From: Rebecca billardiae RCC1528
Taxonomy: Eukaryota > Protista > Haptophyta
DNA: 64,000 nucleotides
Direction: 5' to 3'
NCBI GenBank assembly: GCA_965240325.2
Contig: OZ251253.1
Span: 310,001-374,000, forward strand
A program made the position numbers and the translations under genes. A model generated the notes under the pieces. It ran no database searches. It was not told where the DNA came from and was given only the letters and a program-made list of their open reading frames with translations. Positions 16,118-52,965 of the stretch are shown one piece after another. The stretch's first letter is position 1, and each line of letters starts with the position of its first letter.

Positions 16118-19428
<3,311 letters not shown>

Positions 19429-32692: not shown

Positions 32693-35646
32693 CTACCCCC
32701 AGAGCACGCTCTGCGTCTTGGCCATCTCGCTCTTGACCCGCGCCACGTACTCCGCCTCCGCGCGCTCGATCGCCTGGCGCTCCAACACCTTTGAGTTCGC
32801 CTCGAGCTGCTTCGAAAAGTGCTTGTGCTGCATCTGCGTCTTGAGGTAGGCGGAGTGCTCGAGCTGCCGCTTCTGCTCGTTCTCGCGCTTGATCTGCTCG
32901 AGCTTGTTCACGCGCTCCACCTGGCGGGGCGGGAAGGTAGGGTTGGGGGGTAGGGTTGGGGGGTAGGGTTGGGGGGTAGGGTTGGGGGCGGCAGGCGTGT
33001 GAGTGAGGCCACGCCGCACGTGCGCGCGCGCGTGGCGGCGCCCGCCCGCGCGCTGCGCGCTCACACGTGCGCGCGCGCGGGCGCCAGAGCGCGAGGGAGC
33101 GCGCGCTCCCGGGGCGGCGGCGCGCGTGCGCGCACCTCCCGTTGGATCACGTCCAGCTCCGCGAGGTGGTGCGCGCGCGCGGCCGCGCGGTCCCGCTGCC
33201 TGTCCTCGATTTGCTTCTGCCGCCCTTCCAGCGTCACCTGCAGCAGCTGCTCGCGCGCCGCCTGCTCGCGGCCCCACTCCGCGACGCGCTTGTCCCACGC
33301 CTTGCCTGGCGGCGGGTGAGGGTGAGGGTGAGGGTGAGGGAAGCACGGCGCGCACACACAGAGACAGAGAGAGCACGGCGCACACACACAACGGGGGTTA
33401 GGGTTAGGGTGAGGGTGAGGGTGAGAGGGTTAGGGTGAGGGTGAGGGTGAGAGAAGCACGGCGTGCACACAGCCGCGGGGCCGCTGCATGCGCGCGGCCC
33501 GCCCGCCCGGCCGGGCGGGCAGCTGGGTGCCGCCCAGCCGCGCGCCCGCTCGCCCGGCTGGGAGCCGCCCAGCCGCGCCCGTGCGCGCGCCGCGCCCAGC
33601 CCCCAGCCTTGCGCCCGCGCGCGCGCGCGCCCGGCTCGCGCTCGCACCGAGGTCGGCCTCGCGCGCCTTCTCGAGCTCCGCCTCGTCCGCTGCCTCCTTC
33701 GCCATCAGCAGCTGCAGGTGGCGCTGGTAGGCGAGCGACTCCTGCTTGAGCCGCTCGTGGTGCGCGCGCTCGAGCCGCTCGTCCTCCGCCTCCTTCGACA
33801 AGACGGAGTCCAGCCGGGCTGCGCGGCGGCGCCAGCGGGCCAGGGCGGGGACGGGCGGGGCGGGCGGGCGGCGGGCCGGAGCGGGCGCGGGCGGGCGGGC
33901 GGGGGCGGGCGGGCGGGCGGTGGGGTTGGGTGTTTGGTGTTGGGTTAGGGTACGGGCAGATGTCAGTGTCGCCGTCGGGCGAGGGCGCGGCGCCAGCATG
34001 GTCGCCACCCCGCCCGCGCCGCCCTACTGCCCCCGCGCGCCGCGCGCCGCGCGCCGCGCGCCGCGCGCCGCGCGCCGCACCCTTATCCTCCTCGAGCTCC
34101 TTGGCGTACGCGCGCGCGCGGTCCGAGCGCTTCGCGACGTTGAACGAGTCCAGCTCGAGCTTCGCCGCGTACTGCGCCTTCCGCCGCTCCACCTCCGCCA
34201 CCTCCTGCGCGTCCTTTTCCGCCTGCCACTGCTGCGCCATCAGCTCGGCGGCGCGCTCGCGCTCGGCCGCGTCCGCGTCGCGCAGGGCCTGTTTCTCCGC
34301 GGTCTGGGCGGGTGGCGGTGTGCGCGCGCGGAGGGAGGCGGGGGAGCACGCGTGAGGCGGGGCGGGGCGCGCTCGGCGCCGACGGCTGACGCCGCCGCCG
34401 CCGCCGACACGCGCTGCACGCACGCGCCCACACGGGCGTCCGCACGCGCGGCACGCGGCCGGACCAGCGGCCGGCCGCGCCCGCGCACCCGCCCGCTCGA
34501 TCGCACCGCACCGCACGCCGCCACCCACGCGCGCGCCGGTGGCAGCACGGCTGCGCCACCGCCCCCCGGACTCCGACAGCCCGTCCACCGCCCTCCGGAC
34601 TCCCACAGCCCCACCGCGCCCCCCTGTGACGCGCCGCGCGCTCGCGCCTAGGCCTGTGGCACACCCGGGCCAGTGACACCCCCTCTCTCCCTGCCTGGTG
34701 GCTGCCGCCGGTGCCCGCCCGCCCGCCCGGGGCCACGCCCGCACGCCTGGCCGCCCCGCACACGCCCCCGGGCCCCCGCCTCCCTCGCGCACTTCTCCTC
34801 CTCCCGGACGAGCTCCTCCCACGCTCCTCCCGGATTCCTCCTCCTCCCGGACTCCGCGCGCACCTGTCTGGCGAGGATGCGCATCTGCTCCTCGTCCATC
34901 GCCCTGCGCTGCGCCTCCTCCTCCGCCTCGCGCCGCTCCTTCGCCTCGGCGTCCTTGACCCACATGTCGGCGAAGACCTTCTCCTCCTGCTGCTCCAGCT
35001 CGAGTAGCGCCATCCGCTCCTCGATCTGGTACCCGCGCGCCGCGTCGCACGCCTTGGCGATGTTGGCCGAGTCGGCGTTGCGCAGCGGGTCGCACGACAG
35101 CCGCCATTGCCGGTCGAGCTGCTCCTGCACGTACGTGCGGCGCGTCTCCTCGCGCTTGTTGCGCAGCTCGCGCGCGCGCGACTCCATCCGCTCGCGCCGC
35201 GCCTCCGGGCCCTCGCCCAGCGCCTCGATCTGCCGCTCGAACGCCTCGTCCTCCGCGCGGAGCATCTCGGACAGCTTCCGGCGGCGCTCGATCAGCAGCT
35301 GCTTGTCGGCCGCGCGGATGGAGTCGAAGCGCTGCTGCACGGCGCGGCGGCGGATCACGCCGTCGGTGCGCTGCTCCCACTGCGCGTACGCGCCGCGCTT
35401 GAAGTCCTCCTTCACCGCCTCCGACATCTTGAGCCGCTCGCTCTCCTGCTTGCGCTTCTGCAGCACGATGAAATCCGAGCGGATTCCGCCATGGCCAACC
35501 TGCGCGCCGGGCGGCGGGGCGCGGGGGATGGCGGGGGCGAACGGTGGCGGTGAGGCCCGGGCGGCCTGCGGGCCGCGGCCTCGCGCCGGGCGGGCGGCCA
35601 GGCGCGCGCGGCGACGGGCGGCGAGTGCCGGCGAGCCGCCCACCAT
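32693..35646 (-). CDS. CFAP53: Cilia- and flagella-associated protein 53-like (CCDC11, TPH coiled coil), 6 exons
   Basis: Exons 35646-35644 (ATG only), 35499-34864, 34303-34081, 33818-33648, 33305-33136, 32920-32693, all GT-AG and frame-consistent; ERRRKLSEML..E, RARELRNKREETRR..VQEQLDRQWRLSCDPLR motifs. Confidence 0.8.
32936..33452 (+). repeat. Intronic telomere-like / G-rich repeats (GGGTGA, GGGTTA, GGGGGGTAGGGTT)
   Basis: 32936-32988 four GGTAGGGTTGGGG units; 33314-33340 and 33393-33452 (GGGTGA/GGGTTA)n. Confidence 0.85.
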
Positions 35647-35803
35647 CCTGGCCACAGCTTCGAACGCCCCAATAACCGAACTTTTCGTCCGGACTGCGCA
35701 CCGGCTTCCACCGGACCAAGCCGGGCGGCTGGCGAGGCCGACCTCCACGACGGGCGCGATCGCGGTCGCCGCGCTCTCCTCGCGCCCGGGGGCTCAGCAC
35801 GCC

Positions 35804-38488
35804 ATGAAGCGCACCGGAGAGAGCGACGGCCGCACGCCCGTGTACAATCTGATGCGGATGTTGACGGGCTTCATGCGATCAGCTTCGGCTCCGTCGGCGC
35901 AGCGCGAGCTCGACCTCGGCGGCTCCAGCGCCGACGCTCGCGCTGACGATGCCACCGAGTTGCCGGCGCCGAGCCCGCCCGAGGCGGATGGCGCGAACAA
36001 GAGGGCCAGGCACTCGATGGTGCTCGACTCACGTGACACCGGGCCCGATGGGTCCACTCCATCCCACGTGGATGGCGCGTTGCCCGTCGCGCAGGCTGCT
36101 GCTGCCCTGCGCTGCGACCAGGAGGAGGACGGCGATGACGATGACGCGGAGACGGTGGTCGGAGGCGGGGATGAGCGCGAGGAGCCCGCCGGCATGGGCG
36201 ATGCTTCGCCTTCTGTGTTCCTTGGCGTGCACTACGAGGCAGAGATGGGGCGGTGGCGTGCAAGCGTATGCCACAACGGCAGCCAATACTACGCGCCCGG
36301 AGGCCTGGCAACTGCCGCCGAGGCGGCGCGCGCGTATGACGCGCTCGTGCGCAAGAAGCGCCTCGTGGGCGTGAAGCGGCTCAACTTCCCTTCACCACAC
36401 GAGTACGAGCTCGAGCTGCAGGCCAGCCGCGCCGCGCAGGCCTCGAGCCACGGCTTTGTGGGGATTACCTGCAATTCCAGCCGCCAGACGGGTCCACGAC
36501 CATGGCAGGGAGTTGTCTGTCACAATGGGAAACAGCTTTATGCCGGCAGCCATGCCACGGCGGAGGAGGCCGCGCACGCGTACGATGCACTCGTGCGCAA
36601 GAAGGGCCTGGTGGGCACCAAGCGGCTCAACTTCCCCACGGCTGACGAGCACGACCTCAACGAGCGCTGCACGGTGAACCACAACAGGTGCACCATCACG
36701 GCCGTGCACAGACCAGCAGCAGCGGAGCCCGCCATCGAGCAGCCGCCGCCTTTACGCCGCCCCTCTGCACGCGTGGCTGAGCAGGGGCCCGCTGCTGCTG
36801 CCGGTGCTGCATTGCCATCTGCCTTGCACCAGCAGCTCGCCACGCCGCCCTCCATCGAGCACCCTGCGCCCGCCAGCGCTGGCCTCAGCTCGGCCGCAGG
36901 TGCACACGCAGAGGCGGCTGCTTCTGCGCCTGCGGACACGCTGGCCGGCACACCCGGCGAGAGCGGTGCTGAGCCGCCGCCGCGCCTCGCGACGCTCGAG
37001 GCCAGCGTCGAGCGCCCGTGTGAGCACGTGGGTCACACCGGGCCGCCCGCTCGCAGCGGCGAGACTCCAGATGGGGCCTCGCCCTGCGGCCACGAGGAGG
37101 AGGACGGCGATGACGATGACGCGGAGACGGTGGTCGGAGATGGGGATGAGCGCGAGCAGCCCGCCGGCATGGACGACGTGTCGCCTTCCGACTTCGTTGG
37201 CGTGTGCTACGCTGCAAAGAGGGGGCGATGGGGTGCACAAGTGGTGCACAAGGGCGTCAAACACCACGCGCCCGGACGCCTGGCGACTGCCGCCGAGGCG
37301 GCGCGTGCGTACGACGCGCTCGTGCGTGAGAAGGGCCTCGTCGGCGTGAAGCGTCTCAACTTCCCGTCCTCGCACGAGCGCGAGCTCGAGCTGCAGGCCA
37401 GCCACGCCGCACATGCCTCGAGCCACGGCTTTGTGGGAGTTTCCTGTAGCTCAGGGTCTGGCACTCCACGACCGTGGCAGGGATTTGCCCGTCACAACGG
37501 GAAGCGACTTTGCACCGGCAGATATGCCACAGCGGAGGAGGCCGCGCGCGCGTTCGACGCGCTCGTGCGTGAGCTTCACCTGGTGGGCATCAGGCGGCTC
37601 AACTTCCCCACGCCGGACGAGCGCGACCTCAACGAGCGCTGCCCGGTGCGATCCAACAGGTGCACTATCACGGCCGTGCACAGACCAGCAGCAGCGGAGC
37701 CCGCCTCCGAGCAGCCGCCGCCTTCACGCCGCCCTTCTGCACTCGCGGCTGAGCAGGGCCCGGCCGCTGCCGTCGACGCCACACAGCCAGCTGCCTTGCA
37801 CCAGCAGCAGCCCGCCATGCCGCCCTCCGCCGAGCACCCGTCGCCCTCCAGCGCTGGCGTCGGCTCGGCAGCAGCTGCGCGCGCGGAGGCGGCTGCTTCT
37901 GCGCCCGCTGACACGGCGGCCGGCACAGCCGGTGAGAGCGGTGCTGAGCCGCCGCCGCTCCTCGCGACGCTCCAGACCAGCGCCGAGCACCCTTACCCAC
38001 ATGCCGCTCACATCGTGCCGCCCGCTCACAGCGGTGAGACCCCCGAGGCTGCTGCTGCGGTGCAGATGATCGTCGAGCTGAAGATGCAGCTGCACACGCG
38101 CACGTGTTTAGTCAAGCGGCTGCAGGCCGAGCTGCGCGGCGTGCGCGCGCGGCTGCAGGCGGCCGAGCACGTGGCGGAGCACGTGGCGGACCCTGCGCGC
38201 GTGCGCGTGCTGCGGCAGGTGCTGAGGGCCGAGGTGGCGGGCGCTGGCTCCAGGTGCGCTGGAGCTCGCCCATGCCGCGCCGCCCACGCATGCGCGCGCG
38301 GTGCGACTGTTGCGCCAGCCAGCAGCCCCGCACGCCCCACCAGCTCTCTCACTTGGTACTGACCCAGTCCACACCCCACCTCCCCTGACTGCCGGCGCAG
38401 CACTGACGCCGACGGGTCGGCATCGCGTGCGCAGGCGCAGCTCGAGTACACGCGCACGCTCGAGAGCCAGCTGCTGCGTCACGGATGA
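35804..38488 (+). CDS. AP2-domain array copy 1 (four AP2 domains + C-terminal coiled coil)
   Basis: Four F.GV...W.A...ATAxEAARAYD...RLNFP domains; intron 38254-38400 gives terminal exon STDADGSASRAQAQLEYTRTLESQLLRHG*. Confidence 0.88.
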
Positions 38489-39167
38489 GGCTCACTCACT
38501 CAGTCACAGCGTTGCTATATATACGTTATGCGCAGCAGTTTACAAAGCTCATATATTAGCGCGTCGGAAACTCGTCGCAGCTTCTGAGTCAGTAGTTGAT
38601 GTCCGGCGGACTCGGACGGACTCAGGGACTGCGAAGCTGAGGGCGAGGCGCATGCGCGGGCCCCGCCCCCGGGGCCGGGGCCGCGGTGCGGCCGGATGCC
38701 GGTGAGGTGGGCCGCCTGTCACCTGCTGCCGATGCTTTCACTTTCAGGAGACTCCCCGCGGTCCCAGTGGCCACGGGGGCTGACGGGGCGAGCCGCGTGA
38801 CTGTAAGGCTGCGGCAACATCGCGGATCTGACCGCCTGCGCGCGGTGCGCAGTATTAGCATCATCACAACGAGCTGAGACAATCATCTTATTATTATTGC
38901 TGTGCATCAGATCGGCGGCATGGTCTGAACAACCGTTGCTACTTTTGACGATGAACCCAGCAAGGTTGGATACGGCGAGGCGCAAGGGTCGCAAGGCTGC
39001 CCACCCATACGCTGCCGAGGTCAAGGTGCGCCCGGTGGTGAGTGACGCCATCAATGACCGGCATTGCAGACAATGAGCGGTGCGATTTGCTCTTGATGAA
39101 TCCCGGATCGCGGTTCAGTGCTTTCCGGATCGGCGGGACGTTCGCCGCGCTCTCCTCTCAGCACGCC

Positions 39168-40911
39168 ATGCAGCGCGCCGCAGAAAGCGACAGCCGCGCG
39201 CCCCCGTCCAGTCTGATGCGGATGGCGACGGCTGGGGCTCCTTCGGCGCCGCGCGAGCTCGACCCTGGCGGCTCCAACGCTGACGGTGCCGCGGACTTGC
39301 CGGCGCCAACCGTGCCCGAGGCTGCTGGTGCGAACAAGAAGGCCAGGCACTCGATGGAACTCGAGTCGCGTGGCGGCCGGACCAAAGGGGCCAGCGCGGT
39401 GCACGCGCTGCTCGCCGCGCAAGCTGCCCAGTGGGTGGCGTCTGGCACGACCGACGCACGGCCGCGTGATGGGGCCTCGCCCTGCAACCGTCAGACGGAC
39501 GGAGATGGCGATGCCGTGGAGACGGTGCTTGGAGGCGGGGATGAGCGCGCGCAGCCCGCCGGCATGGACGAAGTGTCGCGTTCGGACTTCTTGGGCGTGT
39601 ACTATAATGCAGCTGCGGGGTGGTGGTCTGCAATAGCCACTCACAAGCGCTGCAGATACCGCGCACCTGGACGCCAGGCGACTGCCGCCGAGGCTGCGCG
39701 CGCGTACGACGCGCTCGTGCGCAAGAAGGGCCTCGTTGGCGTGAAGCGTCTCAACTTCCCGTCCCCGCACGAGTACGAGCTCGAGCTGCAGGCCAGCCGC
39801 GCTGCGCAGGCCAGCCGTGCTGCGCAGGCCTCGAGCCACGGCTTTGTGGGGATTCGCTGTGATTCCAGCAGCAAGGCCGGTCCACGAACATGGCGAGGAT
39901 TTGTCTGTCACAACGGGGAGCAACTTTTCACCGGCACATATGCCACGGCGGAGGAGGCCGCGCACGCGAACGATGCACTCGTGCGCAAGAAGGGCCTGGT
40001 GGGCACCAAGCGGCTCAACTTCCCCACTCCGGACGAGCGCGACCTCAACGAGCGCTGCGTGACACGCAAATACACGAGCGTGGCCGCGCAGAGGCCAGCA
40101 GCAGCGGAGCCCGCCATCGAGCAGCCGCCGCCTTCACGCCGCCCCTCTGCACGCGCGGTGGAGCAAGGCCCAGCCGCTGCTGTCGATGCGGTGCAGCCAG
40201 CGCCCAAGCACGCGCAGCTCGCCATGCCGCCCCCCAGCGAGCACCAGGTGCCGGCCAGTGCTGGCCTCAGCTCGGCCGCAGGTGCACACGCGGAGGCGGC
40301 TGATTCTGCGCCTGCGGACACGCTGGCCGGCACAGCCGGCGAGAGCGGTGCTGAGCCGCCGCCGCTCCTCGCGACGCTCGTGACGAGCGTCGAGCACCCT
40401 TGCCCGCACGACGCTGTCAGCTGGCCGCCTGCTCGCAGCGGCGAGACTCCCGAGGCTGCCGCTGCGGTGGAGATGATCGTCGAGCTGAAGATGCAGCTGC
40501 ATGCGCGCGAGTGTTTAGTCGAGCGGCTGCAGGCCGAGCTGCGCGGCGTGCGCGCGCGGCTGCAGGCGACCGAGCGCGTGGTGGAGCACGTGGCGGACCC
40601 TGCGCGTGTGCGCGTGCTACGCCAGGTACTGAGCGCCGAGGTGGCGGGCGCTGGCTGCAGGTGCGCTGCAGCTCGCCCCATGCCGCGCCGCCCCACGCAT
40701 GCGCGCGCCGTGCGATTGTTGCACCAGCCAGCAGCCCAGCGTATTACACCAAGCTCCTCTCTCACTCTGTACAGTGTACTGACCCAGTCCACACCCCACC
40801 TCCCCTGGCTGCCGGTGCAGCAGCACCAACGTCGACGGGCTTGCATCTCGTGCGCACGCACAGCTCGAGTACACGCGCTCGCTCGAGAGCCAACTTCTGC
40901 GTCACGGATGA
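39168..40911 (+). CDS. AP2-domain array copy 2 (two AP2 domains + coiled coil)
   Basis: Same CAGCACGCC-ATG start context, two AP2 domains, intron from 40661 to 40820/40823, terminal LRHG*. Confidence 0.85.
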
Positions 40912-41327
40912 GTCTCGGTCAAGCGGCGGCACCCAGTCGGCCGACCACGTGTCATCGGAAGAGGCGGGCGACTAAGCTGCTTCGCATCGGCCCGGATGCG
41001 CGTCCGGGAGGCTCGCCAGACGAGGAGTCGCCGCTATTGATCAGCGCGCTGTGGTCTGACGTACTGCTATTTGTAGCCGTGGCGACGTAGCCAGCAAGGT
41101 ATTGGACGGTGGGGCGCAAGGCGGTTCGCGCGAGCGAGGCCACTGCACACACGTCAGTCATTGCTGTCCCGGTCGAGATTGCTCTATGGGGGTACCGGAT
41201 TCCCGGTGTACAGTGGCACCTGTATTCATGGCTTCATGCAAATCCGGAATTCCGAGACGGGCGCCTCCGGACACATTCATGGGCGCTGGCGCGCTGCGCT
41301 CGCCTCACGCCCGAGGCTCAGCACGCC

Positions 41328-43046
41328 ATGAAGCGCGCCGGAGAGAGTGGCAGCCACCCGCCCACGTCCAGTTGGGTGCGGGCGGTTACACCCCCGGCTT
41401 CGTTGGCACCGCGCGAGCTCGACCCCGGCGGCTCCAACGCTGACGGTGCCGCGGACTTGCCGGCGCCGAGCGTGCCCGAGGCTGAAGGCGCGAACAAGAG
41501 GGCCAGGCACTCGATGGGGCTCGAGTCGCGTGGCGGCCGGACCAAAGGGGCCAGCGCAGTGCACGCGCTGCTCGCCGTGCAAGCTGCCCAGCGGGTGGCG
41601 TCTGGCTCGACCGACGCACGGCCGCGTGATGGGGCCTCGCCCTGCAACCGTCAGACGGACGGAGATGGCGATGCCGTGGAGACGGTGCTTGGAGGCGGGG
41701 ATGAGTGCGGGCAGCCCGCCGGCATGGACGATGCGTCGCGTTCGGACTTCTTGGGCGTGTACTACCATGCAGCTGCGGGGCGGTGGTCTGCAATAGCCAC
41801 TCACAAGCGCCGCAGATACTGCGCACCTGGACGCCAGGCGACTGCCGCCGAGGCGGCGCGCGCGTACGACGCGCTCGTGCGCGAGAATGGCCTCGTCGGC
41901 GTGAAGCGTCTCAACTTCCCGTCCCCGCACGAGCGCGAGCTCGAGCTGCAGGCCAGCCGCGCTGCGCAGGCCTCGAGCCACGGCTTTGTGGGGATTCGCT
42001 GTAATTCCAGCAGCCACGCGGGTGCACGGCCGTGGAAAGGACTTGTCTGTCACAACGGGAGGCAGCTTCATGCCGGCAGCCATGCCACGGCGGAGGAGGC
42101 CGCGCACGCGTACGATGCACTCGTGCGCGAGTACCTCCTGGTGGGGACCAAGCGGCTCAACTTCCCCACGCCGGACGAGCGCGACCTCAACGAGCGCTGC
42201 GTGACACGCAAATACACGAGCGTGGCCGCGCACAGACCAGCAGCAGCGGAGCCCACCATCGAGCAGCCGCCGCCTTCACGCCGCCCCTCTGCACGCGCGG
42301 CGGAGCAAGGCCCAGCCGCTGCCGCTGTTGCAGTGCAGCCAGCGCCCAAGCACGCGCAGCTTGCCACGCCGCCCTCCACCGAGCACCCTGCGCCCTCCAG
42401 CGCTGGCCTCGGCTCGGCAGCAGGTGCGCGTGAGGAGGCGGGTGCGCCGCCTGTTCTCGCGGACACGCTGGCCGTCACAGCCGGTGAGAGCGGTGTTGAG
42501 CCGCCGCCGCTCCTCGCGACGCTCGTGACGAGCGTCGAGCACCCTTGCCCACACGTCGCTCCCAACGGGCCGCCCGCTCGCAGCGGCGAGACTCCCGAGG
42601 CTGCCGCTGCGGTTGAGACGATCGTCGAGCTGAAGATGCAGCTGCATGCGCGCAAGAGTTTAGTCGAGCGGCTGCAGGCCGAGCTGCGCGGCGTGCGCGC
42701 ACGGCTGCAGGCGGCCGAGCACGTGGCGGAGCACGTGGCTGACCCTGTGCGCGTGCGCGTGCTGCGGCAGGTGCTGAGCGCCGAGGCGGCGGGCGCTGGC
42801 TCCAGGTGCGCCGCAGCTCGCCCAGGCCGCGCCGCCCCACGCATGCGCGCGCGGTGCAACTGTTGCGCCAGCCAGCAGCCCAGCACGCTGCACAGCCTCT
42901 CTCACGTGGTCCTGACCCAGTCCGCACCCCACCCGTCCCCTGACTGCCGGCGCAGCAGCACTGACGCCGACGGGCCAGCATCGCGCGCACATGCGCAGCT
43001 CGTGTACACGCGCACGCTCGAGCACCAGCTTCTGCGTCACGGATGA
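41328..43046 (+). CDS. AP2-domain array copy 3
   Basis: Two AP2 domains + MQLHARKSLVERLQAELRGVRARLQ coiled coil; homologous intron is in frame and stop-free. Confidence 0.85.
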   Translation: MKRAGESGSHPPTSSWVRAVTPPASLAPRELDPGGSNADGAADLPAPSVPEAEGANKRARHSMGLESRGGRTKGASAVHALLAVQAAQRVASGSTDARPRDGASPCNRQTDGDGDAVETVLGGGDECGQPAGMDDASRSDFLGVYYHAAAGRWSAIATHKRRRYCAPGRQATAAEAARAYDALVRENGLVGVKRLNFPSPHERELELQASRAAQASSHGFVGIRCNSSSHAGARPWKGLVCHNGRQLHAGSHATAEEAAHAYDALVREYLLVGTKRLNFPTPDERDLNERCVTRKYTSVAAHRPAAAEPTIEQPPPSRRPSARAAEQGPAAAAVAVQPAPKHAQLATPPSTEHPAPSSAGLGSAAGAREEAGAPPVLADTLAVTAGESGVEPPPLLATLVTSVEHPCPHVAPNGPPARSGETPEAAAAVETIVELKMQLHARKSLVERLQAELRGVRARLQAAEHVAEHVADPVRVRVLRQVLSAEAAGAGSRCAAARPGRAAPRMRARCNCCASQQPSTLHSLSHVVLTQSAPHPSPDCRRSSTDADGPASRAHAQLVYTRTLEHQLLRHG

Positions 43047-43492
43047 GTCTTATCGAAGCTTAGCGGAAAAGTAGCTGCTGCGCATGCCGGCCCCGCCGTG
43101 ATTCCGGGAGGCTCGTCTGGCGAGGAGTCACTGCTGCTATATAGTATATTGATCCGTGGCGTCGGGTCTGGCGTACTGTACTACTGACACTATTGGTCAC
43201 GACCGCCTTGACGATGCCGAATATAGCGATGCGCTGTACGCCAGCAAGATGGTTCAGTCGCCAGGCCGACCTCGGGGCTGGCGGCTACCTGCGTCACTGC
43301 CAACAGTGCGACACTGGTGTTGCCTCATCAAAGCCGGATACAGCGCCCGACAGCGGTTCCGGAATCCTCCATTCTGGTTTGAGTGGTTTCTGGGTCAGTG
43401 CGTCCGGATTTCCGGGCGAACCGAAACCCGCACGGCCGCTGCGGTGGGACGGTCGGCGCGTCGCGGTCGCTGCGTTCTCCTCTCAGCACGCC

Positions 43493-45205
43493 ATGAAGCG
43501 CGCCGGAGAGAGCGACAGCCGCGCGCCCGCGTCCGGTCTGATGCGGATAGTGACGTTTCCGGCTCAGTTGGCGCCGCGCGAGCTCGACCCCAGCGGCTCC
43601 AACGCTGACGGTGCCGCGGACTTGCCGGCGCCAACCGTGCCCGAGGCTGCTGGCGCGAACAAGAGGGCCAGGCACTCAACGGTGCTCGAGTCGCGTGGCG
43701 GCCGGACCAAAGGGGCCAGCGCAGTGCATGCGCTGCTCGCCGCACGAGTTGCCCAGCGGATGGCGTCTGGCTCGACCGACGCCCGGCCGCCAGATGGGGC
43801 CTCGCAGACGGACGGAGATGGCGATGCCGTGGAGACGGTGGTTGGAGGTGGGGCTGGGCGCGGGCAGCCCGCCGGCATGGGCGATGCATCGCCGTCTGCG
43901 TTCAATGGCGTGTACTACGATGTAACGAATGGGCGGTGGCGTGCACGCGTAGCTCACAAGGGCGTCCGATACGCCGCGCCCGGATTTATTGCGACTGCCG
44001 CCGAGGCGGCACACGCGTACGACGCGCTCGTGCGCGAGAACGGCCTCGTCGGCGTGAAGCGTCTCAACTTCCCGTCCTCACACGAGCGCGAGCTCGAGCT
44101 GCGGGCCAGCCGCGCTGCGCAGGCCTCGAGCCACGGCTTTGTGGGGATTCGCTGTAATTCCAGCAGCCACGCGGGTGCACGGCCGTGGAAAGGACTTGTC
44201 TGTCACAACGGGAGGCAGCTTCATGCCGGCAGCCATGCCACGGCGGAGGAGGCCGCGCACGCGTACGATGCACTCGTGCGCAAGAAGGGCCTGGTGGGCA
44301 CCAAGCGGCTCAACTTTCCCACTCCGGACGAGCGCGACCTCAACGAGTGCTGCGTGACACGCAAATACACGAGCGTGGCCGCGCAGAGGCCAGCAGCAGC
44401 GGAGCCCTTCATCGAGCAGCCGCCGCCTTCACGCCGCCCCTCTGCACGCGCGGCGGAGCAAGGCCCAGCCGCTGCTGTCGATGCGGTGCAGCCAGCGCCC
44501 AAGCACGCACAGCTCGCCATGCCGCCCCCCCGCGAGCACCAGTTGCCGGCAAGTGCCGGCCTCAGCTCGGCAGCAGGTGCGCGTGCGGAGGCGGCTGCTT
44601 CTGCGCCTGCGGACACGCTGGCCGGCACACCCGGCGAGAGCGGTGCTGAGCTGCCGCCGCTCCTCGCGACGCTCGTGGCCAGCGTCGAGCACCCTTGCCC
44701 GCACGACGCTGTCAGCTGGCCGCCTGCTCGCAGCGGCGAGACTCCCGAAGCTGCCGCTGCTGTGGAGATGATCGTCGAGCTGAAGATGCAGCTGCATGCG
44801 CGCACGTGTTTAGTCAAGCGGCTGCAGGCCGAGCTGCGCGGCGTGCACGCGCGGCTGCAGGCGGCCGAGCGCGTGGCGGAGCACGTGACGGACCCTGCGC
44901 GCGTGCGCGTGCTGCGGCAGGTGCTGAGCGCCGAGGTGGCGGGCGCTGGCTCCAGGTGCGCTGCAGCTCGCCCAGGCCGCGCCGCCCCACGCATGCGCGC
45001 GCCGTGTGACTGTTGCGCAAGCCTGCAGCCCAGCGTATTACACCAAGCTCCTCTCTCACTCTGTACAGTGTACTGACCCAGTCCACACCCCACCTCCCCT
45101 GGCTGCCGGTGCAGCAGCACCAACGTCGACGGGCCTGCATCTCGTGCGCACGCACAGCTCGAGTACACGCGCTCGCTCGAGAGCCAACTTCTGCGTCACG
45201 GATGA
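43493..45205 (+). CDS. AP2-domain array copy 4
   Basis: Two AP2 domains + coiled coil + homologous intron and terminal exon. Confidence 0.85.
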
Positions 45206-45621
45206 GTCTCGGTCAAGCGGCGGCACCCAGTCGGCCGACCACGTGTCATCGGAAGAGGCGGGCGACTAAGCTGCTTCGCATCGGCCCGGATGCGCGTCCG
45301 GGAGGCTCGCCAGACGAGGAGTCGCCGCTATTGATCAGCGCGCTGTGGTCTGACGTACTGCTATTTGTAGCCGTGGCGACGTAGCCAGCAAGGTATTGGA
45401 CGGTGGGGCGCAAGGCGGTTCGCGCGAGCGAGGCCACTGCACACACGTCAGTCATTGCTGTCCCGGTCGAGATTGCTCTATGGGGGTACCGGATTCCCGG
45501 TGTACAGTGGCACCTGTATTCATGGCTTCATGCAAATCCGGAATTCCGAGACGGGCGCCTCCGGACACATTCATGGGCGCTGGCGCGCTGCGCTCGCCTC
45601 ACGCCCGAGGCTCAGCACGCC

Positions 45622-47342
45622 ATGAAGCGCGCCGGAGAGAGTGGCAGCCACCCGCCCACGTCCAGTTGGGTGCGGGCGGTTACACCCCCGGCTTCGTTGG
45701 CACCGCGCGAGCTCGACCCCGGCGGCTCCAACGCTGACGGTGCCGCGGACTTGCCGGCGCCGAGCGTGCCCGAGGCTGAAGGCGCGAACAAGAGGGCCAG
45801 GCACTCGATGGGGCTCGAGTCGCGTGGCGGCCGGACCAAAGGGGCCAGCGCAGTGCACGCGCTGCTCGCCGTGCAAGCTGCCCAGCGGGTGGCGTCTGGC
45901 TCGACCGACGCTCGGCCGCGTGATGGGGCCTTGCCCTGCGACCGTCAGACGGACGGAGATGGCGATGCCGTGGAGACGGTGCTTGGAGGCGGGGCTGAGC
46001 GCGAGCAGCCCGCCGGCATGGACGATTCATCACCTTCTGAGTTCATGGGCGTGCACTACGATGTAAAGGCGGCGCGGTGGTATGCAAAAGTACAGCACAA
46101 GGGCGACATCTTCTACGCGCCCGGAGGCCGGGCAACTGCCGCCGAGGCGGCACACGCGTACGACGCGCTCGTGCGCGAGAACGGCCTCGTCGGCGTGAAG
46201 CGGCTCAACTTCCCGTCCTCGCACGAGCGCGAGCTCGAGCTGCAGGCCGGTCGCGCCGCACAGGCCTCGAGCCACGGCTTTGTGGGGATTTCCTGTAATT
46301 CCAGCAGCCAGGCGGGTCCACGACCATGGCAGGGACTTGTCTGTCACAAGGGGAAGCGTGTACGTACCGGCGGCTACGCCACGGCGGAGGAGGCCGCGCG
46401 CGCGTACGACGCGGTCGTGCGTGAGCATTGCCTGGTGGGCATCAAGCGGCTCAACTTCCCCACGGCGGACGAGCGCGACCTCAACGAGCGCTGCCAGGTG
46501 CGATCCAACAGGTGCACCATCACGGCCGCGCACAGACCAGCAGCAGCGGAGCCCGCCTCCGAGCAGCCGCCGCCTTCACGCCGCCCTTCTGCACGCGCGG
46601 TGGAGCAAGGCCCAACCACTGCTGCGGTTGCGGTGCAGCCAGCTCCTGCGCACGCGCAGCTCGCCACGCCGCCCTCCACCGAGCACCCGGCGCCGGCCAG
46701 CGCTGGGCTCAGCTCGGCAGCAGGTGCGCGTGCGCAGGCGGGTGCACCGCCTGTGCCCGCGGACACGCTGGCCGACACACCCGGTGAGAGCGGTGCTGAG
46801 CCGCCGCCGCTCCTCGCAACGCTTGTGACCAGCGCCGAGCACCCTTGCCCACACGACTGCCACGCCGTGCTGCCCGCTCGCAGCAGCGAGACTCCCGAGG
46901 CTGCTGCTGCTGTGGAGGCGATCGTCGAGCTGAAGATGCAGCTGCATGCGTGCACGTGTTTAGTCGAGCGGCTGCAGGCCGAGCTGCGCGGCGTGCGCGC
47001 GCGGCTGCAGGCGACCGAGCGCGTGGCGGAGCACGTGGCGGACCCTGCGCGCGTGCGCGTGCTACGCCAGGTGCTGAGCGCCGAGGTGGCGGGCGCTGGC
47101 TCCAGGTGCGCTGCAGCTCGCCTATGCCGCGCCGCCCACGCATGCGCGCGCCGTGTGACTGTTGCGCCAGCGATCAGCCCAGCACGCTCCACCAGCTCTC
47201 TCTCACTTGGTGCTGAGCCAGTCCACACCCCACCCCCCCTGACTGCCTGCGCAGCAGAACCGACGCTGACGAACCGGCATCATGTGCTCAGGAGCAGCTC
47301 GAGTACACGCGCACGCTCGAGAGCCAGCTGCTGCGCGGATGA
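45622..47342 (+). CDS. AP2-domain array copy 5
   Basis: Two AP2 domains + coiled coil; terminal exon ...LEYTRTLESQLLRG* ends at 47342. Confidence 0.85.
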
Positions 47343-47579
47343 GCCATGAGGAATCAGCGAAGCTCATCAGCAAAGAAGCTAATGGCAATGCCGTGCTTCC
47401 GGGACGAGGCTCGGGCGAGGAGTCACTGACTACACTGCGGTTGATCAGCGGAGCTGTCTGAAGTACCTGCTGCCTTCTGTAGCAGACTCTTCTGTAGCCT
47501 TGATGGCGAGGAGGCTGCCGCCAGCAAGTGAATGAGCAGTAGGTTCGGAAAGTGCCAGGTGGAGGCTGCGGTGATGTGC

Positions 47580-48159: not shown

Positions 48160-48332
48160 TGATGCCCGTTGCTCATCTCGGTTCGGTGCTGCTGCTGTCC
48201 GGATTCGGGATTTCCGCCAATAAATAATGCGGCCACAACCGGACGCAATCCGCATGGGCGCTTGAAGCGGACTGGGGCGGTCGGCGCGATCTCGGTCGCC
48301 GCCTTTCTCCTCGCGCCCGCCCTCAGCACGCC

Positions 48333-50071
48333 ACGAAGCGCACCGGAGAGGGTGACTACCGCGCGCCTGCGTCCAGTCAGATGTTGGCTTCGACTTCGGC
48401 TCCGTCGGCGCCGCGTGAGCTTGACCCCGGCGGCTCCAACGCTGCCGATGCCGCCGACTTGCCGCCGACAACTGTGCCCGAGGCTGCTGGCGCGAACAAG
48501 AAGGCCAGGCACTCGATGGTGCTCGAGGCACGTGGTTGCTGGCACACAGGTGCCAGCGCAGTCCACGCGCTGCTCGCCGCACAAGCTTCTCAGCCGGTTG
48601 CTGATGCTGAGACGACCGACGCACGGCCGCCAGACGGGGCCTCGCCCTGCAAGCAGGAGGAGGAGGACCGCGAGGAGTCGGAGGACGAGAACGCGGAGAC
48701 GGTGGTTGGAGGCTGGGCTGGAAGCGGGCAGCTCGCCGGCATGGGCACCGTGTCGCGTTCCGATTGTTTTGGCGTGCACTATCAGGCAAGGATGGGGCGA
48801 TGGTATGCACACGTAAGTCACAAGGGTGGGCGATACTCCGCGCCCAGAGGCCTGGCGACTGCCGCTGAGGCGGCACGCGCGTACGACACGCTCGTGCGCG
48901 AGAACGGCCTCGTCGGCGTGAAGCGTCTCAACTTCCCGTCTTCGCACGAGCGCGAGCTCGAGCTGCAGGCCGGTCGCGCCGCGCAGGCCTCGAGCCACGG
49001 CTTTGTGGGGATTTCCTGTAATTCTGGCCGCCAGGCGGTTTCACGACCATGGCGAGGAGTTGTCTGTCACAAGAGAAAGCAGCTTTACACCGGCACATAT
49101 GCCACGGCGGAGGAGGCCGCGCACGCGTACGATGCGCTTGTGCGGAAGAAGCGCCTCGTGGGCACCAAGCGGCTCAACTTCCCCACGCCGGACGAGCTCG
49201 ACCTCAACGAGCGCTGCGTGACACACAAGTACACGAGCGTGGCCGCGCAGAGACCAGCGGCAGCGGAGCCCGCCATCGAGCAGCCGCCGCCTTCACGCCG
49301 CCCCTCTGCACGCGCGGCGGAGCAAGGCCCAGCCGCTGCCGCTGTTGCGGTGCAGCCAGCTCGTGCGCACGCGCAGCTCGCCACGCCGCCCTCCATTGAG
49401 CACCCTGCGCGTGCCAGCGCTGGCCTCAGCTCGGCCGCAGGTGCGCGTGCGCAGGCGGCTACACCGCCTATGCCCGCGGACACGCTGGCCGTCACTGCCG
49501 GCGAGAGCGGCGTGGGACCGCCGCCGCTCCTCGCGACGCTCGTGACGAGCGCCGAGCACCCTTGCCCATCCGACGCCCACACAGCGCCGCCAGCTTGCAC
49601 GGAGGAGACTGCCTAGCTAGGCTGCCGCTGCGGTGGAGATGATCGTCGAGCTGAAGATGCAGCTGCATGCGCGCACGAGTTTAGTCGAGCGGCTGCAGGC
49701 CGAGCTGCGCGGCGTGCGCGCGCGGCCGCAGGCGGCCGAGCGCGTGGCGGAGCACGTGGCGGACCCTGCGCGCGTGCGCGTGCTGCGGCAGGTGCTGAGT
49801 GCTGAGATGGCGGGCGCTGGCTCCAGGTGTGCTGCAGCTCGCCCCATGCCGCGCCACCACCCAGCATGCATCTGCACTACGCACCAACACCGCGCCAGCC
49901 AGTGCGCTGCACCCGTGTCGCCTCGGTTTGGCACTGACCCAGCCCACACCCCACCTCCCCTGACTGCCGGCGCAGCAGCACTGACGCTGACGGGCCAGCA
50001 TTGCGTGCGCAAGGCGCAGCTCGAGTGCGGCGCCGCGCGCTCACGAGAGCCACCTGCTCAGCGGACGATGA
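48333..50071 (+). pseudogene. AP2-domain array copy 6, disrupted or truncated
   Basis: Start ATG changed to ACG at 48333 (next in-frame ATG 48381); 4-bp CTAG-type insertion near 49613 gives a stop at 49616 and a frameshift before the coiled coil; both AP2 domains intact. Confidence 0.8.
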
Positions 50072-50897: not shown

Positions 50898-52927
50898 TAG
50901 GCTGTCCGACTCTACACTGCTGTGTAGAGGCTGCCGAAAGTCTGCTCTAGCGGGACCCCCGCGCACTGGGGTCGTTCCGGGCGCGAGCTCGGCGGGGACG
51001 TGGCGAGCGGGTCGGCGCGCGCCGTGGGCTGGGTGTGCGATTTTACCAACGTATCGGTCGACCTGACCCTCCCCGTCGCGCCGCTCTTGCCCTCGTGGCC
51101 TCTCTTCCCCCCAACACGGGTGCGCGCAGCCGCTTGAACAGCCTGGCTGCAGGTCGTTCACAGACGGCAGGCCGCGTGCAACCTGCGCGGGTGAAGAGGG
51201 GTGGCTTGTTGCGTGGTTACGCGGCTGACGCCCGTGTGTGGCCTTGCGAGCCTTTGTGTGCGAGGTTACTTGCCCACATCTGCTCTCGCGTGTCATGCGC
51301 GCGTGCAACGAACACTATGCCGTATGCGACCCGCCTTGCAGCAGCCGAGGCCACTGCCACTGGCTATCCACGTCGCGCGCGAGATCGTCGACATTCTGAC
51401 GGGCTCGCATCCAGGCGAGTGCAAGTGCGCGCGCTGCGTTACGTTCCTCCCGTCCACTGGAGGTGTGCACTGTGAAGCGGAGTCCAGCAGCCAAAACGAC
51501 ATGGGCATCTGACTCGTCATTCGTGTCAACCTGTGACGACGGGCATCGCGCCAGGCTGAGAGGCCAGTGCCCAGGATAGCTCGGGTGATGGGGCACCGCA
51601 CGTCTGATCATCGGATGGCAGATGAAGTCAGCAACGTACTAGATCAAGCGTCGGCTTGTCCACGTCGCCGGCGCGGTGTGCGCACTCTCCTGCTGCCGCT
51701 GCTGCACTACAGCGCTACTGTACTCTGACAATTCTAGGATTTAAAGACACATCAGGTATGAGGACGCAGCTCTCCTGATTCGTCTGTCGAAGTACTGATT
51801 GGAGGCGGAGGATGTGAGCGCGTTAGCCGCGGATGAGGGAGTCGTCGCCGATGCTGATCACTGAGATGCCGCGCGCTGTGACTTGCAGTCGTCGGTCGTC
51901 ACGCCGTTGCCGCCGTCGGACGGTCGGTCCCGGCTGACGAGTGACGGTCCGAGTTGATGCAGTAAGCTAGTGAGAGTAGTCTGCGTGGATGCTCACGCCA
52001 GCCGCCGGTGCGGTCGGGGATGGCGCTCAGCCTAGCCGTGGGGGAGGTAGTCGGCCTGGCCGGCGGGCGGGGTTGCTCAATATTCGTTTCTTTTAATATT
52101 TTATTCATCGCCGTGGATTTAATTTTAAACCCGGCCACGCTAACGACATGACCTTGTGGCGCGTTGCGTCGGAGAACGGGACGGCAGCCTGCCCGCTCGG
52201 AGCGTGCTTGTACGCCACAAGCATGCGGGCGACGATGCTTGATGATTCCCACTCTCGCACCGGAGCTGTGAGTCTGTGTAACACAGTGACGCGGGAGCCG
52301 AGGGTGACTCGACGGGCAACTTCAGGAATGCACCTGCCAGAAGCACTGCCTTCAATATCAAGCACGCAGATGGCAAAGACGAAGGCCACAAGCATGCGAC
52401 AGAACATGTCAACGATATGGCGTCACCGTCTTAGTGCCTGCAGTGGCCCCACGCTGGCCCAGCTGGCAGCAGGTGGACAAGCGCAAGCGCAGCGGAGATC
52501 CGATGGTGTACGTTACACGCGCGCATGACACGCGAGAGCGGATGTGGGCAAGTAATCTCGCACACAAAGGCTCGCAAGGCCACATATGAGCGTCAGCCAC
52601 GCAACCACGCAACAAGCCACCCCTCTTCACCCGCGCAGGTTGCACGCGGCCCGCCGTCTGTGAACGACCTGCAGCCAGGCTGTTCAAGCGGCTGCGCGCA
52701 CCCGTGTTGGGGGGAAGAGAGGCCGCGAGGGCAAGAGCGGCGCGACGGGGAGGGTCAGATCGACCGATACGTTGGTAAAATCGCGCACCCAGCCCGCGGC
52801 GCGCACCGACCCGCTCGCCACGTCCCCGCCGAGCTCGCGCCCAGTGCAGCCCCAGTGCGCGGGGGTCCCGCTAGAGCAGACTTTCGGCAGGCCCCCCGTA
52901 GCCAGCGGAGGGGGGCCGGACAGGCTA
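50898..52927. mobile_element. Non-autonomous Mutator-like element (MULE), ~420-bp TIRs, 9-bp TSD
   Basis: TSD GTTCATCAC at 50889-50897 and 52928-52936; termini TAGGCTGTCCG / CGGACAGGCTA; long inverted homology 50931-51318 vs 52503-52890; no transposase ORF. Confidence 0.9.
51724..52050 (-). repeat. Dispersed repeat family copy nested inside the MULE
   Basis: Reverse complement aligns by eye with 58400-58738 (GTGATCAGCATCGG..CGACGACTCCCTCA.CCGCGG..AACGCGCTC..ACATCCTCC...CAGTACTTCGACAGACGAATCAGGAGAGCTGCG). Confidence 0.8.
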
Positions 52928-52965
52928 GTTCATCACGCTTTCGGACGTCGGTGGTGCATGCAGCA

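Follow-up and report, generated by a model that had tools for sequence, protein, structure and literature searches.

Mosaic exchange among tandem double-AP2-like paralogs in the haptophyte Rebecca billardiae

Introduction

In plants and apicomplexans, as well as in some algae, the AP2 proteins constitute a major family. Within a 64,000-nucleotide stretch of the genome of the haptophyte Rebecca billardiae RCC1528 (hereinafter the window; GenBank assembly GCA_965240325.2, contig OZ251253.1, positions 310,001 to 374,000 of the forward strand), seven tandem genes encode paralogous proteins with two predicted AP2 domains each, denoted AP2-A and AP2-B, and an inverted array of six further paralogs is located downstream. 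Here we show that these 13 paralogs are mosaics of one another in which recombination has re-paired the two domains, and propose that this reflects the usual mechanism in tandem paralogs, not a dedicated system for module swapping.

Mosaic divergence through interlocus conversion has been documented for tandem paralogs (bioRxiv 10.1101/2025.10.29.685298). The HMA4 genes of Arabidopsis halleri (bioRxiv 10.1101/2025.10.29.685298; PMC3749932) resemble the present family in being tandem paralogs with short tracts and mosaic divergence, where the conserved parts are homogenised and the selected parts stay distinct. In R. billardiae, however, there are 13 copies in two inverted, mutually exchanging arrays, and the diverging parts are two predicted DNA-reading sheets. 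Clusters of poly-zinc-finger genes likewise show short conversions, detected with GENECONV, along with adaptive change in the DNA-reading positions (PMC2604467). These clusters, of the KRAB-ZNF type, share with the arrays described here lineage-specific tandem expansion, fast amino-acid change in the (here predicted) DNA-reading parts and short conversions, whereas the reading element here is a predicted AP2 beta-sheet instead of a C2H2 finger, and each protein contains only two reading modules and no module array of variable length.

For AP2/ERF genes themselves, a count of gene conversions between homeologs exists in the case of Brassica napus (PMC4982375). In another haptophyte, Emiliania huxleyi, a large lineage-specific AP2/ERF expansion accounts for 33% of the transcription factors in the respective survey, which counts family members and does not deal with tandem double-AP2 arrays or mosaicism (PMC4827209). 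Two tandem AP2 domains joined by a short linker, as in the present family, are found in WRI1 (PDB 7wq5) and in SIP2 of Plasmodium (PDB 6sy0); according to the title of the latter entry, the tandem AP2 is bound to two half-sites. The R. billardiae proteins are only ~25-35% identical to these and additionally contain a spacer rich in Pro and Ala and, at the C-terminus, a heptad-rich helix. In our literature search, we came across no account of double-AP2 proteins whose two heads have been re-paired.

The value of this locus is that of a clear, well-resolved example in which the two predicted DNA-reading sheets diverge fast on a fixed scaffold while the paralogs are still exchanging DNA, with a set of natural A/B chimeras that are suited to binding assays. 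If each of the two sheets specifies one half-site, the arrays would represent a natural experiment in the building of new composite AP2 specificities by recombination.

Two arrays of double-AP2 paralogs

The window belongs to a 72-Mb genome of ~70% GC that is assembled in 41 contigs, with 928 kb in this particular contig. When one unit was compared by BLAST with the window and the following 26 kb of the contig, 13 homologous units were identified. Seven of these (A0-A6) form the plus-strand array inside the window, at 35.8-50.1 kb, with a unit of ~2.1 kb; the other six (B1-B6) form the minus-strand array, which is inverted and lies ~22 kb downstream of the A array (contig 382-397 kb; loci L001-L004). 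TRF reported no array at A0-A6, the 2.1-kb unit being above its period limit. A palindromic origin of the two arrays was considered and rejected: the best cross-array partners (A6-B4, A0-B3, A1-B2 and A5-B1) break the mirror order, so the arrays are no simple palindrome.

All the genes follow the same plan. An ATG in a conserved context opens an N-terminal region of ~140 aa, followed by AP2-A, which consists of a variable sheet segment of 31 aa and a nearly invariant helix segment of 29 aa ending in LNFP, then by an inter-domain linker of 18 aa and by AP2-B (sheet of 35 aa, helix segment of 29 aa). Downstream of AP2-B come a post-linker of two length types, a Pro/Ala-rich region of ~115 aa and a heptad-rich helix of 58 aa. 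The two AP2 domains within each gene are divergent from one another.

Beyond the heptad-rich helix, the read-through open reading frames (ORFs) differ in frame and length. A GT donor is present directly after the "...VLRQ" codons in 12/12 copies that reach this point, and the next 220-270 nt are rich in indels; past this stretch, a conserved segment of 15-18 codons ends with TGA at the same place in 10/12 copies. The indel-rich stretch is probably a spliceosomal intron and the conserved segment a short exon 2. Exon 1 and exon 2 were handled separately in searches.

Mosaic relationships among the paralogs

An earlier note on this DNA had proposed that AP2-A, AP2-B and linker modules are shuffled among the paralogs (its copies 2-6 correspond to A2-A6, and its copy 1 to A1 or to the A0/A1 fusion described below). 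The pairings on which it was based are all reproduced in the DNA. A2 and A3 share nearly the same AP2-A and have different AP2-B (identity of 94.6% in the A sheet and 80.0% in the B sheet); A3 and A4 share an identical B sheet (100%, 105/105 nt) and have different AP2-A (63.4% in the A sheet); and A3 and A5 have the N-terminus in common (97.4%) but neither domain (71.0% in the A sheet, 81.9% in the B sheet). The post-AP2 linker also switches type as described, being dimorphic in DNA with a length difference of 6 nt. The short, CVTRKYTS-type post-linker is present in A2, A3, A4, A6, B1, B4 and B5, and the long, NRCTIT-type one or its variants in A0, A1, A5, B2, B3 and B6. This dimorphism cuts across other similarities: B1 has the short type, yet its sheets are closest to those of A5, a copy with the long type. 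For almost every one of the 13 copies, the nearest neighbour shifts between segments, and each A-sheet or B-sheet type that is common to at least two copies is found with at least two different partners.

The pairwise homoplasy index (PHI, own implementation) of the alignment is 0.467, compared with a permutation mean of 0.593 +/- 0.0056, and none of 2000 permutations reaches the observed value; restricting the analysis to the AP2 region or to either array gives the same outcome (0/2000). As a null that allows for the strong rate heterogeneity, 25 alignments were simulated along the one best tree, with the rates estimated for the individual sites left in their actual order. These simulations without recombination gave z values between -2.3 and +1.7, as opposed to z = -24 for the real data.

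Maximum likelihood trees of seven segments place the same copy with different partners. A3 joins A5 in the N-terminus (bootstrap support 99), but its partner is A2 for the A sheet (100) and A4 for the B sheet (92). B4 goes with A6 (100), then with B2 (96) and then with B6 (100), so that the conflicting clades have 92-100% support. In approximately unbiased (AU) tests each cross-segment tree is rejected, with p from 0.03 down to <1e-50; in particular, the A-sheet data reject the B-sheet tree and vice versa (p ~3e-6). The per-segment phylogenies that the earlier note had called for are therefore in conflict and clearly far from the congruence of all segments expected if no shuffling had occurred.

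Without recombination, the shared sheets would have to be remnants of the order of duplication, supplemented by convergent or parallel substitution under selection, and sheets under relaxed or positive selection can indeed create homoplasy. However, the one-tree simulations with ordered site rates never come near the observed PHI, the shared tracts mapped below include synonymous, intronic and intergenic sites, and the AU tests reject a single tree, which leaves this explanation effectively refuted. Taken together with the tracts that cover a whole B sheet (see below), the PHI and AU results firmly establish recombination among the paralogs, and its re-pairing of AP2-A with AP2-B, as put forward in the earlier note, is upheld.

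The tract map and the mode of exchange

Individual exchanges were mapped with a GENECONV-style scan, in which the best-scoring run of matching polymorphic sites was found for each pair of copies, evaluated with 1000 permutations and kept at p <= 0.001. The scan detected 37 significant tracts among the 13 copies, with lengths of 100-1033 bp and a median of ~310 bp. Of these, 14 are within the plus-strand array, 5 within the minus-strand array and 18 between the arrays; hence the A and B arrays comprise one exchange pool. Tract identities extend from 87% to 99.5%, suggesting that the events are spread over time, the youngest being very recent. Several tracts are internal patches with lower identity on both sides (A3-A4, 213 bp, 99.5%; B2-B4, 265 bp; A5-B1, 310 bp, 97.2%; A0-A4, 112 bp), and patches bounded on both sides are the signature of conversion. 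The principal tracts in the plus-strand array are as follows:

40731..41732, + strand: first copy of a recent tract, which takes in A2 sequence (intron and exon 2), the whole spacer between A2 and A3, and the A3 N-terminus
45025..46026, + strand: second copy of this recent tract, containing the A4 3' end, the spacer and the A5 N-terminus
41838..42128 (= 43991-44281), + strand: A3-A4 patch, 291 bp, 97.9% identical
39330..39872 (= 41490-42014), + strand: A2-A3 tract, ~96% identical
39940..40678 (= 44235-44973), + strand: A2-A4 tract in the 3' half, 95-96.5% identical, columns 948-1980 of the alignment

The two copies of the recent tract, which are offset by 4294 bp, differ at only 7 of 1002 bp (99.3% identity), and the 415-bp spacer inside them is 100% identical. 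The first copy starts in the A2 intron and stops 13 bp short of the A3 AP2-A sheet. The core of the A3-A4 patch (columns 782-994), at 99.5% identity, includes the whole AP2-B sheet and excludes AP2-A. The A2-A3 tract covers the late part of the N-terminal region together with all of AP2-A and the linker, and breaks off 36 nt into the AP2-B sheet; the A2-A4 tract reaches from the B helix as far as the gene end. Overall, synonymous, intronic and intergenic sites are covered as well, and tracts occur as often outside the AP2 region (in the N-terminus, Pro/Ala-rich region, intron and spacers) as within it.

We propose that non-allelic homologous recombination copies patches of ~100-1000 bp between paralogs, both within and between the arrays, and that this would occur mostly by interlocus gene conversion, with a minor contribution of unequal crossover or deletion. 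The most economical account is generic, homology-driven conversion, from whose patch size re-pairing would follow automatically. Because the patch length is close to the 260-bp spacing of the two sheets, a patch often carries one sheet, or part of it, without the other, and as a consequence the A and B sheets, the N-terminus with the promoter and the two post-linker haplotypes would come to exist in many combinations.

That deletion or unequal exchange also happens follows from the in-frame fusion of A0 and A1:

35804..38488, + strand: A0/A1 in-frame fusion with four AP2 domains, junction at 37069/37070
36215-36307 and 36449-36553, + strand: AP2-A and AP2-B sheets of A0
37190-37282 and 37424-37525, + strand: AP2-A and AP2-B sheets of A1

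In this fusion, A0 is cut after the Pro/Ala-rich region and lacks the helix, the intron and exon 2, and A1 lacks the first ~115 codons. Altogether, we estimate at roughly 0.8 the probability that the mosaics are explained by interlocus gene conversion, along with a lesser share of unequal crossover or deletion, in a diversifying tandem family of transcription factor-like genes.

Where exchanges end

The earlier note had further supposed that the exchange is channelled through the invariant helix and linker DNA, in a manner reminiscent of the swapping of target recognition domains in type I HsdS. The arrays would then be an organised cassette system, in which intact half-site readers are swapped and which is itself selected as a generator of specificities. 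Some of the tracts have the expected shape. The A3-A4 (columns 782-994) and B2-B4 (782-1046) tracts each extend from the inter-domain linker to the B helix or post-linker, with precisely one complete B sheet inside, and both have the same start site in the linker, at columns 775-782; the B5-B6 tract combines the N-terminus with the whole A sheet and ends in the A helix. Moreover, the DNA coding for the helices, linkers and coil, which is 88-94% identical among the copies, could seed pairing, and the variety of partners found for each shared sheet type is compatible with such a system.

The tract ends as a whole do not conform to it. Among the 19 distinct ends in the AP2 region, 9 are located in sheet-coding DNA (3 of these at a sheet edge), and there is no enrichment in the helices or linkers. 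Sheet-coding DNA makes up 37% of the length of the AP2 region and 58% of its polymorphic sites, and the end positions reject neither of the two corresponding nulls. Six ends, at columns 610, 625, 880, 909, 927 and 934, are well inside a sheet and thus give rise to chimeric sheets. For example, the 60 nt encoding strands 2-3 of the A sheet are the same in A5, B1 and B3 (alignment block 601-720), whereas these copies differ strongly in the preceding 25 nt, in which B3 matches A0; the A sheet of B3 is accordingly a chimera, with an A0-like beta-1 and A5/B1-like beta-2 and beta-3. Chimeric sheets are at least as common as clean module swaps. A copying-model Viterbi scan was over-fragmented (206 switches) and is only of qualitative use; in it, switches are not rarer in the sheets than in the helices. 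The equal frequency of tracts outside the AP2 region and the sporadic, evolutionary character of the events that is apparent from the 87-99.5% tract identities also speak against a cassette system. Furthermore, the 10 long ORFs scanned between the arrays (>=330 aa only), among which are a GT64/GT1 glycosyltransferase gene, one for a dual-specificity phosphatase and an OGFOD2-like gene, contain no recombinase or integrase domain. The proposed channelling thus finds no support in the tract ends, and we regard a selected cassette system as an unlikely alternative to generic conversion.

With respect to HsdS, the likeness is no more than a functional analogy: in both cases, two variable DNA-reading modules (predicted ones in the present family) are separated by conserved segments and enter new pairings through recombination. 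It does not extend to the mechanism, given that the tract ends are not confined to conserved DNA and that no recombinase was found in the ORFs scanned. The fold, the type of organism and the genetic context are also unrelated, the genes of the A and B arrays being AP2-like, eukaryotic and endowed with a predicted intron, and having the above glycosyltransferase, phosphatase and OGFOD2-like genes as neighbours, with no restriction-modification partner genes found nearby in the ORFs scanned. Unlike in phase-variable HsdS, the exchanges are evolutionary events, and there is no sign of reversible, programmed switching.

Selection on the sheets and the scaffold

The selection estimates are derived from pooled pairwise Nei-Gojobori counts, a crude measure for recombining sequences that yields a segment-wide omega rather than a site model; JC denotes Jukes-Cantor:

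A sheet: omega 1.13, dS ~0.36
B sheet: omega 0.69, dS ~0.36
A helix: omega 0.17, dS 0.18
B helix: omega 0.37, dS 0.24
Heptad-rich helix: dS 0.078
Intron adjoining the heptad-rich helix: JC distance 0.26

By this measure, the AP2 helices are strongly constrained and the A sheet is, on average, unconstrained. The 170-aa AP2 region contains 80 invariant columns. DNA identity is 88-94% in the helix, linker and coil segments, and 94% in the C-terminal heptad-rich helix (columns 1480-1653, e.g., 42597-42770 in A3). The low dS of this helix suggests either homogenisation or constraint at the nucleotide level. It appears that the heptad-rich helix and the AP2 scaffold are kept uniform through constraint and, probably, homogenising conversion, while the sheets stay different. 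The few variable residues of the heptad-rich helix are grouped in one heptad (T/E/K, C/S and K/E positions).

In the published structures of plant AP2 domains with DNA, the sheet is the DNA-contacting part. By analogy, the variable sheets of the present family are likely to be the DNA-contacting faces, so that re-pairing would alter the composite target site, and the diversity of the sheets is presumably maintained by selection. The near-uniform C-terminal helix might let the paralogs heterodimerise, which would multiply the readable composite sites, and the repertoire could track fast-changing targets such as transposons or viruses, like the KRAB zinc-finger clusters of vertebrates. The combination of all these elements, whereby both arrays would be a single combinatorial generator of DNA-reading proteins that exchanges whole or partial sheets, moves promoters along with N-termini, pairs its products through the helices and follows transposons or viruses, is a speculative proposal that we consider rather improbable.

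Relationship to the AP2 family

The assignment of both domains to the AP2 family is weak but consistent. The open frame of the A0/A1 fusion (34673-38362), with its four domains, scores 54.1 bits against the Pfam AP2 profile (PF00847; cut-off 33.3) and encodes the sole product at this locus that is above the cut-off; the single genes score 18.6-30.8 bits, below it, and A2 has no match. A genome-wide six-frame scan with the same profile gave 30 and 27 bits at the A0-A6 locus. A profile built from 14 single domains matches both AP2 repeats of the plant WRI1 (7wq5) with E = 4.8e-5, which is its only match in PDB, and a search with a single sequence recovers the same structure with E = 1.6e-4.

Close relatives outside this genome were not detected in these searches. 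A word-based protein search with the whole exon-1 protein had no matches, probably because it was swamped by low-complexity words; when limited to the AP2 region, it retrieved two distant proteins, with 36% and 29% identity. A metagenome scan in which the AP2 alignment served as the query likewise turned up no close relatives, its best match being 37% identical. Within the same genome, more distant paralogs at 34-37% identity occur on other contigs, and additional groups of open frames with multiple AP2 domains, whose identity to the A/B family is 34-49%, are located as follows:

Contig C13, 1,625-1,638 kb: distant multi-AP2 cluster
Contig C36, 839-843 kb: distant multi-AP2 cluster
Contigs C14 and C18: further distant multi-AP2 clusters

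The 13 paralogs are a lineage-restricted family in an algal genome, and the conclusions drawn here are independent of the absence of relatives.

Assembly, gene integrity and competing explanations

Several considerations weigh against conversion in a diversifying family of this kind. The tracts with 99-100% identity, which are the most striking ones, are known from the assembled sequence alone, and near-identical patches could in principle be artefacts of assembly or polishing, with reads misassigned within a repetitive array. However, most tracts are 88-97% identical and have acquired substitutions of their own since the exchange, which an artefact cannot make. The identical B sheet of A3 and A4 falls in the part of the gene with the highest polymorphism (62% of the columns), where reads map unambiguously, and the contiguity of the assembly implies long reads that span several 2.1-kb units. 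An artefact is therefore very improbable. In addition, A-B similarities with a single breakpoint could be leftovers of the duplication of the array and not the result of later exchange.

With regard to the gene products, an AlphaFold2 model based on the 13-paralog alignment shows the beta-beta-beta-alpha arrangement twice, but its mean predicted local distance difference test score (pLDDT) is only 56.9, and a Foldseek search with this model gave no match at E <= 0.001; the rows weaker than this threshold include WRI1, the TEM1 AP2 domain and the tandem AP2 of SIP2. The crude nature of the omega values, mentioned above, belongs here as well.

Furthermore, 3-4 of the 13 copies appear damaged. 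The reading frame is interrupted by an in-frame TAG in A6 and B4 and by a 1-nt frameshift in B1, and no intact exon 2 is present in A6 or B6. The TAG of A6 (~49612-49620) is located just ahead of the heptad-rich helix, and A6 is probably truncated or a pseudogene. It shares the TAG with B4 (at ~7100 in locus L002), along with the 5' flank and the N-terminus (91%), and the frameshift of B1 (locus L001) is in the same area. The helix-coding DNA past these defects in A6, B4 and B1 is still 94-97% identical to that of the intact copies.

One might thus consider the whole array to be non-functional and decaying, with the mosaicism having no biological consequence, all the more so as most of the single copies fall below the Pfam AP2 cut-off and the genes are known from the genome sequence only, with conservation as the basis of the intron and exon-2 model. 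Against decay, 9-10 copies retain an open exon 1 of 1.4 kb together with the conserved exon 2, and the helix omega of 0.17-0.37 and the invariant columns of the AP2 region (80 of 170) reflect a fold that is held by purifying selection, while changes gather mainly in the sheets. We consider decay very improbable as well, and favour conversion within a family that is largely intact.

Individual copies and neighbouring features

The extents of the homologous units, as found by BLAST, and of the genes with their parts are given below for the plus-strand array:

35767-37071, + strand: homologous unit A0
37070-38492, + strand: homologous unit A1
39157-40915, + strand: homologous unit A2
39168..40911, + strand: A2 gene
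39585-39677, 39678-39764 and 39765-39836, + strand: A2 AP2-A sheet, helix and linker
39837-39941, 39942-40028 and 40029-40112, + strand: A2 AP2-B sheet, helix and short-type post-linker
40452-40625 and 40626-40856, + strand: helix-rich segment and predicted intron in the 3' part of A2, followed by a short exon 2 ending with TGA
41292-43050, + strand: homologous unit A3
41328..43046, + strand: A3 gene (AP2-A sheet 41745-41837, AP2-B sheet 41979-42083)
42171-42254 and 42771-42991, + strand: short-type post-linker and predicted intron in the 3' part of A3
43482-45209, + strand: homologous unit A4
43493..45205, + strand: A4 gene (AP2-A sheet 43898-43990, AP2-B sheet 44132-44236, short-type post-linker 44324-44407)
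45586-47345, + strand: homologous unit A5
45622..47342, + strand: A5 gene (AP2-A sheet 46039-46131, AP2-B sheet 46273-46377, long-type post-linker 46465-46554)
48306-50026, + strand: homologous unit A6
48333..50068, + strand: A6 gene (AP2-A sheet 48762-48854, AP2-B sheet 48996-49100)

The linker of A2 (39765-39836) contains an in-frame tandem duplication of 18 bp, that is, six codons, which is near columns 775-782, where two independent conversion tracts start.

Directly downstream of the plus-strand array there is a pair of inverted repeats of ~320 bp, ~97% identical to each other, at 50979-51305 and 52516-52842. An open frame of 978 aa at 52525-55461 encodes a GT64 glycosyltransferase domain and a GT1 (group 1) glycosyltransferase domain. 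Upstream of the array, at 17814-18529, the window contains an imperfect, TGC/GGC-rich tandem array of 716 bp with a period of 21-30 and 62-64% matches.

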